The notes under the pieces: generated by a model
Seen by the model: only the letters and a program-made list of their open reading frames with translations
What the model was told of the DNA's origin: nothing
The model's database searches: none
Part shown: in pieces, positions 12,297 through 18,325 of the stretch
How the letters are laid out: each line of letters starts with the position of its first letter
Position numbering within the stretch: position 1 is the stretch's first letter
Assembly (NCBI GenBank): GCA_965637545.1
Contig: OZ281499.1
Coordinates: 21,142,001-21,206,000, forward strand
DNA from: Phallusia mammillata
Taxonomy: Eukaryota
Length of the DNA: 64,000 nt
Direction: 5' to 3'
Made by a program: the position numbers and the translations under genes

Positions 12297-15200
12297 ATGG
12301 TCATAAGAAGGTTTCTGTTGGGCGCCATCCTGATTTATTTGACGTCAGAAGTTCACTGTCAACGAAGTAAGTTTCAAATGTTGTTGCATATCTGATAATT
12401 TATAAGAAAAACTGTTCCTTGATACACAAAAGCTCTTTGTAAGTGTTAGTGGGCTATAAGAAAAGCATGAATAATAAACATTTAACAGTGTACCACATTG
12501 CTTTTTTTATTTAATTGGTCAATTAACTTAACTTCTTAGATCGTATTAACTAAAGCATCAACAAAATTTGCTGTGTTTATTTGCAAAATTTGCAAGGTCA
12601 CTATGAATAAGGGCTCCCACCAAAGAGATGATTGTATAACATTAAAAAAATTGCGTCAGCAAACATCAACAAGTTGCAAATTTTTTTTGAATGAAAACCG
12701 TGGGAAATTCGAAAACGTGCATCGCAGGTCACGTATTGTTACGTCAGTTTTGTTTTTGTTGAGTAAAATCGCTAACGCCGTTGTTTTCCTGCTTCGTGAT
12801 TGGTCAGACCGGTTTACGCGGCGCCAGAAGACGTTCAGTTCGACTGCCTGGTACTGGGGAGGGCGGATTAAGGAAAAAGTCACGTGGTCATGTTTGGCAT
12901 TACGTAAACATGTGGTTTAAGCTGGGTTAGAATCTGAACGCTTAAAAGCGCATTAACCAACGATATTTCAAACCAAGCCAAAGTAAAGTCAATTATGGCA
13001 GAAGTTTTTTCATAAGGTTTAAAACAATCAAGTTGTTTCGGCTAAAAGACATTTTCCCACTTTTTTTATGAAACAGCCGAAAGTTCAAACCTAGAACTAG
13101 ACCGAATCCCAATATTTTGAAACAAAACGGTGAAATAACAGCATAAAGCAGCCTGAATCTTGCCCATTTGTTTAAACATAAACTGAGACCCGAAAGGCCC
13201 TGCCCGACTTACAACTCTGTTTCAATTCATATTTGCCTTTGTAAAACAGACATTTGTACACTCATTACTCTATTTCAGGGCATTTATTTTTGGAACTGGT
13301 TACGCCTCTTCGGGAAGGCGATGAAATTGTAATTGAGGGTACGATTGAACCTCGTCCCTCAACTATTCGGTTCTTCAGTTCATCTACTGTCTGCTCATCC
13401 GGTATTCCAAGAAGCAACACTATAGTTCCGAGATGTCACCCCCTTGTCATTAAGTTCAAGCCAAGAAACAGAATAGTAAGCTGTTGTTTATGGTGTTTAT
13501 ATTGTTGGACGCAAACAGTTGAATAGTAAACTTTTGTGCCATCACCAGTAAAACCATATTTGTTTAAAAACCACAAGATTTTCTGCCTTAATTAATGAAA
13601 TGAGAAAAGCCGATTTTTGTAAAAATGCCAACCTTACTTTTATTTCAGTTTCCTCTCAAAACGGTTATTTTTTCGAATCCAATTACCCGACAAAACATTA
13701 ACAGTGGTTGTGGATTTAAAAATTCTTTAAGCTACATTTCAGATCGTTTGTTAGGCGTTTTATTGTTCCTACAGTTATTCTAAATCCAGTTTACACAACA
13801 ATAATGACCAAACTAAAAGGTTTACAAAAAAAACATTGTTATATAACGACCCCCAAGTGGCAGCGAAATGTCTTCCTACTGTTGTTTACAAACATGATTG
13901 TTTCTTCACAGGTAACGTTTGGCTTCAAAGGAGCTGACAGCAACTACGTTGACGAGGAACTTGCCAGAGATCGTCTCCTTGACGATATTAGAATTAAAAA
14001 ACAATTTCGTATGATCGTTAAAGGTAGGTAATAATCTCACTAACGACACGCTACAATCAAATGGGATTTTTTTGTTCGACGTGTTTCTAAAGCAAACAAC
14101 AATCAGTAAAATTCTGTACCAGTTTTTTTACCCGCCAAGTAATTTTTACTTTATGATACTTTTTCTATTTGAATAAGAAAGTCCCAGGGAGGCCAACATG
14201 CCTTTGCTTTAATTTAGTATTTACAGTCTACAATTTACATAAAAAATAAGACAAGACAAATACTACTGAAAATAAAAACCAAAAAAATTAAAAGAAAGAA
14301 ACGTCTAAGAAAAATCTTACTTCTGACGTCATAATGCACAAGCTATAGTAGCAATATCTAAAAGTTGTTTTTAATCACAGTGTTAAACCTGGCGTATCAC
14401 ATCACGTTCAATGGAAAATATCTCAGGACAGTTGATGATCATGTTGGCCACGATGAAATTAACGCTGTGAGGTCGTATGGTGGAAACTTCCAAGAATATT
14501 ACATTGCTTACAACAGCAGAGGTCTCGATGGAAGCGGTAAACCAAAACGCGTTGGTCGAGTCTCGCGCCGGAGAAAAAACCATCATAAGCACTAAATCAA
14601 TATCTTTCCAAACAACTGTGTAAAATATTGCGCGTTTTTTTGTATACTGTGCTATTGTTTTGCTGGAGGTTCGAATCGACAATAAAGCTATTTTTGTCAC
14701 TGTATTTTGATAGCGTTTTTGAAATTTAGTCTTCTTGGTGGATGATATTTGGCGTTTAGAAACAGCACACAAAGTCATACACACCTTACAAGGCAAACGC
14801 TTTACAATTACCTGGTTTAACTGACCATTAGACGTTCAACGTGCCATTTTGAAACCTATACACTTCCAGATACAAAAAAACATTTTTTAACAAAACCCCT
14901 TTGTTTTAATTCCACAGAAATCTGCGGCACCCGTCCGGCGCTTAATACCTACACGGCAAGAATAGTCGGGGGCACGAACGCGAAAAAAGGGGAATTCCCT
15001 TGGCAAGTATGTAATATTTCAATTTTAGTTGTTTTTAGTGGAGGTATTGTGTGCGAGAGTCTATGATCGAAACATGCTTTAGCGGGGCAAATGAGTTCAA
15101 ACCAAAATGATTTAAACTAAGTAAAACTTTTTTAACGTGTCCTCCACAAACTGTAGGACAATATAGGATATCGTGTTTAATTTGTCGCTGTTCAACCTTT

Positions 15201-18200: not shown

Positions 18201-18325
18201 GGGGCGTGACGAGTTGGGGCGACGGATGTGCCAAAAGAAACAAACCGGGAATTTATACAAAAGTTATCGACTTTATTGACTGGATTGACTCTTACATGGA
18301 TCAAGCCTCCACAAGTGTTGTGTGA
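12297..18325 (+). CDS. Secreted S1 (trypsin-type) serine protease with an N-terminal galectin-like domain; 467 aa, 11 exons
   Basis: Exons 12297-12366, 13279-13475, 13912-14023, 14381-14536, 14918-15006, 15586-15698, 16210-16306, 16615-16736, 17296-17396, 17584-17714, 18110-18325; all GT-AG, phases consistent, 1404 nt. Signal peptide [21 protein letters not shown]. Activation site ICG...TAR|IVGG. Catalytic triad motifs [14 protein letters not shown] and GDSGGP are intact. S1 Asp in [10 protein letters not shown]; [10 protein letters not shown]...PGIYTKV present. Confidence 0.93.
14163..14177 (+). other. 15-nt match to the Ciona spliced-leader sequence within protease intron 3
   Basis: TTCTATTTGAATAAG versus the Ciona SL ATTCTATTTGAATAAG as recalled (15/16). 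It is not followed by GT, so it is not an SL RNA gene. Confidence 0.35.
15908..15960 (+). repeat. ACCCGA/CCCGAACCC short-motif array in protease intron 6, probably the subterminal region of a degenerate DNA-transposon family
   Basis: AACCCGAACCCAACCCGAACCCGACCTGGACCCGCCCGAACCCGCCCGAACCC. Related CCCGA-rich patches occur at about 13185-13219 (ending TTACAACTCTG), 16915-17205 (starting TAGAGCTGTAAA) and inverted at about 47345-47515. Confidence 0.55.
16867..16889 (+). repeat. Poly(A) tract (A23)
   Basis: Read directly; intronic. Confidence 0.9.
16915..17205. repeat. Degenerate CCCGA-motif interspersed repeat copy in protease intron 8
   Basis: TAGAGCTGTAAACCCGGTCAAACCCGAA at the left and CCCGAACTCGAACACGACCCGAA at the right; boundaries approximate. 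Confidence 0.4.

Follow-up and report, generated by a model that had tools for sequence, protein, structure and literature searches.

Galectins in their classical form are cytosolic proteins made without a leader peptide, the textbook case of such synthesis, and the mosaic S1-family proteases of coagulation, fibrinolysis and complement gain their specificity from binding modules at the N-terminus. In uPA, tPA, HGFA, FXII, plasma kallikrein and neurotrypsin these modules are kringle, EGF, fibronectin, apple or SRCR domains; to our knowledge no two-chain mosaic S1 protease carries a galectin fold, and a full-text literature search found no paper on a fusion of galectin and S1 protease or on the Ciona accessions described below. 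Here we analyse a gene of the ascidian Phallusia mammillata that encodes what is predicted, with high confidence, to be a galectin fold in this position. The gene occupies positions 12297–18325 of the forward strand of a 64,000-nucleotide stretch of contig OZ281499.1 (positions 21,142,001–21,206,000; hereafter the window). Its product comprises, in order, a putative signal peptide, an N-domain of ~150 amino acids (about residues 23–171), a cysteine-containing linker with an R/IVGG activation site, and an S1 protease domain.

Eleven exons (Table 1) join into a single open frame of 467 codons, translating as a 467-residue protein, with GT-AG borders throughout the 10 introns. Contigs of RNA type, together from three studies, show all ten joints; in the four runs aligned to 12290–18289 each falls exactly on an exon boundary and is flanked by GT..AG; the joint 12366>13279 was present in four runs, and a single 1678-nt contig of run X3 covered exons 1–11. 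The two junctions for which the initial annotation had proposed a search for spliced reads, 14023–14381 and 14536–14918, were observed as 14021>14379 (cut +2) and 14535>14917 (cut +1), and the peptide stretches that it quoted from exons 2–4 all lie in the translated frame. The ten joints in transcript contigs therefore confirm the gene model. Exons 2 and 4 are single-copy in the 240-Mb genome, where no paralogue was found.

A phmmer search with exon 2 identified three true relatives, including a 468-residue protein of Clavelina lepadiformis (P0002), and a word search with the Clavelina protein added Ciona intestinalis XP_002130563.1 (464 residues) and two full-length Logan transcripts, which encode 451 and 453 residues (from runs SRR32906208 and SRR32906212). 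The fused architecture was found in Clavelina, Ciona and both Logan transcripts, and the exon partition and intron phases are the same in the gene on a 98-kb ENA contig (L015) and at the Ciona locus (L020). Over its full length the Phallusia protein shares 45.5 % identity with that of Clavelina and 43.7 % with that of Ciona, the N-domain reaching 38.5 % with each and the protease about 50 %. The fusion of galectin fold and protease is therefore older than the split of these ascidian lineages. Other tunicates carry orthologues of the same layout, so that the gene is real, expressed and conserved, and not a chance chain of open reading frames. Four further exon-2 matches (P0003, P0004, P0006 and P0007) were rejected as long repeat, kinase or SPRY proteins of protists or bacteria with unrelated Pfam content and a chance G-D-E-V-I-type motif.

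The fold of the N-domain was modelled on residues 22–175 of the Clavelina orthologue (P0002:22-175) as a proxy for the Phallusia domain. A six-row alignment gave an unusable AlphaFold2 model (predicted local distance difference test, pLDDT, 43), and the prediction became confident once the alignment also took in Ciona and both Logan transcripts: with ten rows, drawn from the family only and without galectins, the pLDDT was 84.1 and the predicted template-modelling (TM) score 0.81. The model has 11 strands in the order S1, F2, S3, S4, S5, S6, F3, F4, F5, S2, F1. In a Foldseek search of the PDB the best 50 matches were all galectins (best E 4.5e-8), with entries for the N-terminal domain of galectin-8 reaching TM scores of 0.75/0.79 at a root-mean-square deviation of 2.9 Å. 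An ESM Atlas model and language-model features likewise point to galectin. When a profile of the family was searched against all PDB sequences, 33 of the 37 matches were galectins aligned in register (galectin-8, -16, -10 and -13, besides an adenovirus-fibre galectin domain), although the best E was a sub-threshold 0.034, or 0.3 with a shallower alignment, and the exon 4 part aligned in register with galectin-8, -10, -13 and -16. That exon also carries the conserved motifs NG, IGH(D/E)xI and RSYGGxFxEYY. We therefore predict with high confidence that the N-domain adopts the galectin fold, an 11-strand beta-sandwich.

The leaderless synthesis of classical galectins does not appear to extend to this domain. 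A hydrophobic N-terminus, read from the sequence, is present in all five full-length family members, and a Cys-x13-Cys loop inserted between strands S3 and S4 is kept in 5 of 7 species sampled. Both Logan members lack one loop cysteine and carry another in the exon-3 region, which could act as an alternative pairing partner. The loop cysteines of the N-domain would fit an extracellular protein.

In the protease half, Pfam Trypsin (PF00089) matched exon 11 on its own at E 1e-18 and the orthologues at E 1e-55 to 1e-59, and the catalytic motifs TAAHC, NDIAL and GDSGGP are all present in the spliced protein. Asp189 stands six residues ahead of the catalytic Ser (D-S-C-Q-G-D-S-G-G), and predicts Arg/Lys (trypsin-type) specificity for this S1A chymotrypsin-fold protease. 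The activation site T-A-R/I-V-G-G spans residues 191–197, with the cysteine of E-I-C-G 13 residues upstream, and R/IVGG is conserved in Clavelina, Ciona, L015 and P0013. The chain from Cys181 onwards contains 12 cysteines, positioned as the pairs 1-122, 42-58, 50-111, 136-201, 168-182 and 191-220 would require, on an assignment after the uPA/tPA pattern with pairing taken from homologues; the total for the mature protein, 14, is even. Cys181 and Cys326 (Cys1-Cys122) and Cys234 and Cys315 (Cys50-Cys111) are kept in 5 of 5 full-length members, and the 50-111 disulfide is typical of uPA, tPA, HGFA and FXII. The solved structures nearest to the Clavelina protease domain are plasma kallikrein, HGFA, uPA, hepsin and FXII (E 1e-36 to 1e-40). 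With these neighbours and this cysteine pattern, the label 'plasminogen-activator/neurotrypsin-type' given in the initial annotation is a fair one. Its central proposal, that splicing joins a galectin-like domain with a signal peptide in frame to an intact trypsin-like zymogen, is borne out by the RNA-type contigs and, as to fold, by the Clavelina model. Pfam found no kringle, EGF, fibronectin or SRCR module ahead of the protease in the orthologues; the galectin fold is the sole N-terminal module.

A second, predicted product of the gene consists of the leader and the galectin-fold domain without the protease. Contigs from two different studies run through the donor of exon 4 (X1 record 2, 14507–14680; X9 record 11, exons 1–4 and on to 14647) to an in-frame stop at 14593–14595, adding a 19-residue tail with an isoelectric point of about 12 and giving a 197-residue product. 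Run X9 contained only this short form, with no protease exon covered, and run X3 only the long form. No other intron held a same-strand transcript, the only other intronic contig being a minus-strand one in intron 1 from run X3, and the exon-4 read-through is therefore unlike general intron retention. In Ciona, the C-terminus of the 191-residue NCBI protein XP_078493425.1 is exactly the read-through of the equivalent donor; production of a stand-alone galectin-fold module from the gene thus appears to be conserved.

Taken as a whole, these results are best explained by a tunicate mosaic serine protease that bears a non-canonical galectin-fold module and is accompanied by a module-only product, an account that we consider probable. 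Several observations weigh against it. The RNA type of the runs is a program's guess, although the share of sampled words speaks for it: nine runs of this organism, spread over three studies, contained 0.10–0.20 of them, close to the exonic share of about a fifth. No poly(A) reads were seen for the short transcript, and the contig depths in run X1 (20.6 over exons 1–4, 9.66 over exons 5–11 and 11.5 over the read-through) are a crude and poor measure of isoform ratio. The structure was predicted for an orthologue of 38.5 % identity and not for the spliced Phallusia protein. One family member, P0084 (Logan SRR32906212), lacks R/IVGG: at about residues 185–195 S-M-L-G-E replaces R-I-V-G-G, with His, Asp and Ser intact, which could reflect either a paralogue that cannot be activated or a fault of the assembly. 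The Pfam galectin model PF00337, proposed in the initial annotation as a check, is silent on the gene and its relatives: exons 2, 3 and 4 gave no Pfam match at E<=10, the N-domains of four full-length orthologues (P0002, P0009, P0013 and P0084) no galectin match at E<=1, and a six-frame scan of the genome produced 52 galectin exon matches, none of them in the fusion gene. A hidden Markov model (HMM) of the N-domain scored the genome's own galectin exons no higher than decoys (six-frame pieces of 12 local galectin loci and window decoys), and an hhalign comparison of the family with spliced local galectins, in register, was not significant (P 0.024 with five sequences, 0.22 with eight).

Common descent of the N-domain from galectins is likely but, with PF00337 silent and the HMM and hhalign comparisons to local galectins not significant, unproven. 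The alternative is that the domain is some other concanavalin-A-like jelly-roll whose topology came to resemble that of galectins by convergence or drift. It draws on the lack of a significant sequence relation to PF00337 or to the genome's own galectins, on intron positions unlike those of the local galectin genes, and on Atlas rows for stonustoxin-type and glycoside-hydrolase sandwiches that reach TM scores of 0.67–0.77. Set beside the run of galectins among the best PDB matches, such an origin strikes us as unlikely. An intron position common to the fusion gene and the local galectins was considered and rejected: theirs lies in strand F3 at phase 0, four codons from the phase-1 intron of the fusion gene, and they have no intron after S4.

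The genome's true galectins retain the sugar-binding signature H-F-N-P-R ... N ... W-x-x-E-E-R intact (W-Q-x-E-E-R in the clustered form). Of the canonical H-x-N-P-R ... N ... W-x-x-E-x-R the fusion family keeps only P-R, with the Arg invariant, and the end of S4 in exon 2 reads K-F-K-P-R where galectins have H-F-N-P-R. The signature His is replaced by K, L, T, K and D in the five full-length members, and the first Asn is always Lys or Arg. On a residue register for exon 3 that comes from sequence alignment and may be off by a few positions, the position of the S5 Asn is occupied by Gly, His or Lys across orthologues and the Trp position varies between Tyr, Phe, Pro and His. With His, Asn and Trp of the sugar site all substituted, canonical beta-galactoside (lactose-type) binding by the N-domain appears unlikely. 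The initial annotation had envisaged a working beta-galactoside-binding carbohydrate-recognition domain (CRD) that steers the protease to N-acetyllactosamine-type glycans. The galectin fold itself, the retained Pro-Arg and, in the Phallusia protein, a Tyr and a Glu-Glu lying roughly at the galectin Trp and Glu speak for such a domain, but the loss of His and the first Asn in every orthologue, the residues aligned with the S5 Asn, the unconserved Trp position and the absence of a Pfam galectin match leave it quite improbable, and a 'glycan-targeted' protease is unsupported as far as beta-galactosides are concerned.

Under the account we favour, of a mosaic protease with a non-canonical module, the long product would be secreted as a zymogen whose galectin-fold sandwich is stapled by its own loop disulfide. 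A trypsin-like activator would cut between R193 and I194 to yield a two-chain enzyme, and from the cysteine positions the galectin-fold light chain should stay tethered through Cys181-Cys326. By analogy with the kringle, apple and SRCR modules of related proteases, the galectin-fold module would most likely be an exosite for recognition or targeting whose ligand is non-canonical, be it another glycan or a protein. That the N-domain is instead mainly a large pro-region, serving as a folding aid or protease inhibitor, would suit its place directly upstream of the activation site and its faster evolution (38.5 % against about 50 % identity for the protease), but is very unlikely given that the Cys1/Cys122 pair predicts continued attachment after activation, that two distant ascidians also produce the module by itself from the same gene, implying a protease-independent function, and that the domains in the equivalent position of the solved relatives (kallikrein, HGFA, uPA, hepsin and FXII) are binding modules.

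The read-through RNA is present in the contigs, and the 197-residue protein translated from it would likewise be secreted. Speculatively, the free module could occupy the same ligand as the protease without bringing proteolysis. Carried further, the protease and a free module produced by intronic polyadenylation might form a self-contained switch, in which the free form competes with or primes the protease at a shared non-lactose ligand, and that ligand could lie on the tunic, the egg coat or microbes; we regard this extension as something of a long shot. If true, the switch would give the sister group of vertebrates a cis-fused analogue of lectin-MASP systems, and the galectin fold would have entered the secretory pathway and taken on a new binding specificity.

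The annotated Ciona isoforms P0009, P0129, P0130 and P0131 differ only in the linker from the galectin fold to Cys1, plus one 20-residue insert in the protease, which suggests alternative splice sites in the Ciona linker. At L020:10001-11251 (C. intestinalis AP043578.1) NCBI splits the orthologue into two gene models, a 191-residue 'uncharacterized protein' made up of the N-domain and the intron read-through and a 213-residue trypsin fragment, and the last two protease exons lie ~6 kb further on, past an EF-hand gene on the opposite strand.

Elsewhere in the Phallusia genome, canonical galectins form tandem clusters at G000:C6:20085000-20260000 and G000:C2:27311000-27331000, with at least 40 PF00337 exon matches; the C6 cluster lies ~0.9–1.05 Mb upstream of the fusion gene on the same contig. 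Neither Rfam nor a tRNA scan gave a match in 11500–19500 of the window, and this includes the minus-strand contig in intron 1 (12763–12937, 175 nt, depth 3.6 in run X3). Short stretches rich in CCCGAACCCGA(C/A) recur in the introns at 15895–15960, 16915–16945, 17155–17205 and 17765–17815. The galectin locus L008 contains a similar motif, which there encodes G-F-D-P-G-S repeats, and the motif is probably a dispersed repeat of the genome.

Table 1. Features of the fusion gene, with positions in the window. Strand order follows the AlphaFold2 model of the Clavelina orthologue and the register to galectin-8 follows the PDB profile search.
Feature	Position	Strand	Content
Exon 1	12297..12366	+	Start codon; putative signal peptide with basic n-region and hydrophobic core, likely cut after Cys21
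Exon 2	13279..13475	+	Strands S1, F2, S3, inserted Cys62-Cys76 loop, S4
Exon 3	13912..14023	+	Strands S5, S6 and the greater part of F3; the domain varies most here
Exon 4	14381..14536	+	Rest of F3, then F4, F5, S2, F1; start of linker
Exon-4 donor read-through	14537..14595	+	19 very basic codons and stop; ends the 197-residue product
Candidate polyadenylation signal	14681..14686	+	AATAAA, the sole one in 14537–14800; read-through contigs end at or before it
Exon 5	14918..15006	+	Linker cysteine Cys181 ('Cys1'); activation site R193/I194-V-G-G
Exon 6	15586..15698	+	Cys42, Cys50, Cys58; catalytic His (TAAHC)
Exon 7	16210..16306	+	Protease domain
Exon 8	16615..16736	+	Catalytic Asp (NDIAL); Cys111
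Exon 9	17296..17396	+	Cys122 (PVCLP), Cys136; conserved NWT glycosylation sequon
Exon 10	17584..17714	+	Cys168, Cys182
Exon 11	18110..18325	+	Asp189 (trypsin-like S1 pocket); catalytic Ser (GDSGGP); Cys191, Cys201, Cys220; stop codon

The initial annotation knew of no characterised protein with this architecture. This stands as regards the literature, but the Ciona and Clavelina orthologues are already catalogued under automatic names: in NCBI the Clavelina protein is 'chymotrypsinogen B-like', and the Ciona isoforms are either 'serine protease 29-like' or 'neurotrypsin-like'. A 202-residue Ciona fragment is entered in UniRef as 'Galectin', and some automatic pipeline has therefore caught the likeness. 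The large Atlas clusters contain galectin folds fused to tyrosinase or to tectonin propellers, and none fused to trypsin.

The fusion is a mosaic S1 protease with a new module and, equally, a galectin fold in a new context. With galectin CRDs, of which Caenorhabditis elegans LEC-6, the N-terminal CRD of human galectin-8 and the galectin-3 CRD are the best structural matches, the N-domain has its fold in common. It differs from them in a signal peptide and an inserted disulfide loop between S3 and S4, both predicted, in its protease partner, in the lack of a PF00337 match, in the replaced His, Asn and Trp of the sugar site, and in intron positions unlike those of the genome's canonical galectins. 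GRP/HSPC159, GRIFIN and galectin-10, -13 and -16 are likewise galectin folds without canonical lactose binding, as is predicted for the fusion domain. These are small cytosolic or leaderless single-domain proteins, whereas the fusion domain would enter the secretory pathway and is covalently joined to an enzyme.

On the protease side, uPA, tPA, HGFA, FXII, plasma kallikrein and neurotrypsin share with the fusion protein the R/IVGG-type zymogen site, cysteines at the places of the Cys1-Cys122 and Cys50-Cys111 pairs, and Asp189, and differ in the N-terminal module, which in the fusion gene is a galectin fold. MBL/ficolin-MASP and horseshoe-crab factor C couple lectin-type recognition to an S1 protease, the function that the initial annotation had imagined for this gene. 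In MBL-MASP the lectin and protease are separate proteins, and factor C uses C-type-lectin, sushi and LCCL modules. The galectin fold has so far not been described among the modules of mosaic S1 proteases, and a galectin fold with a putative signal peptide and a predicted disulfide staple on a secreted enzyme would mean that, in the lineage closest to vertebrates, the classical secretory pathway has taken up the fold.

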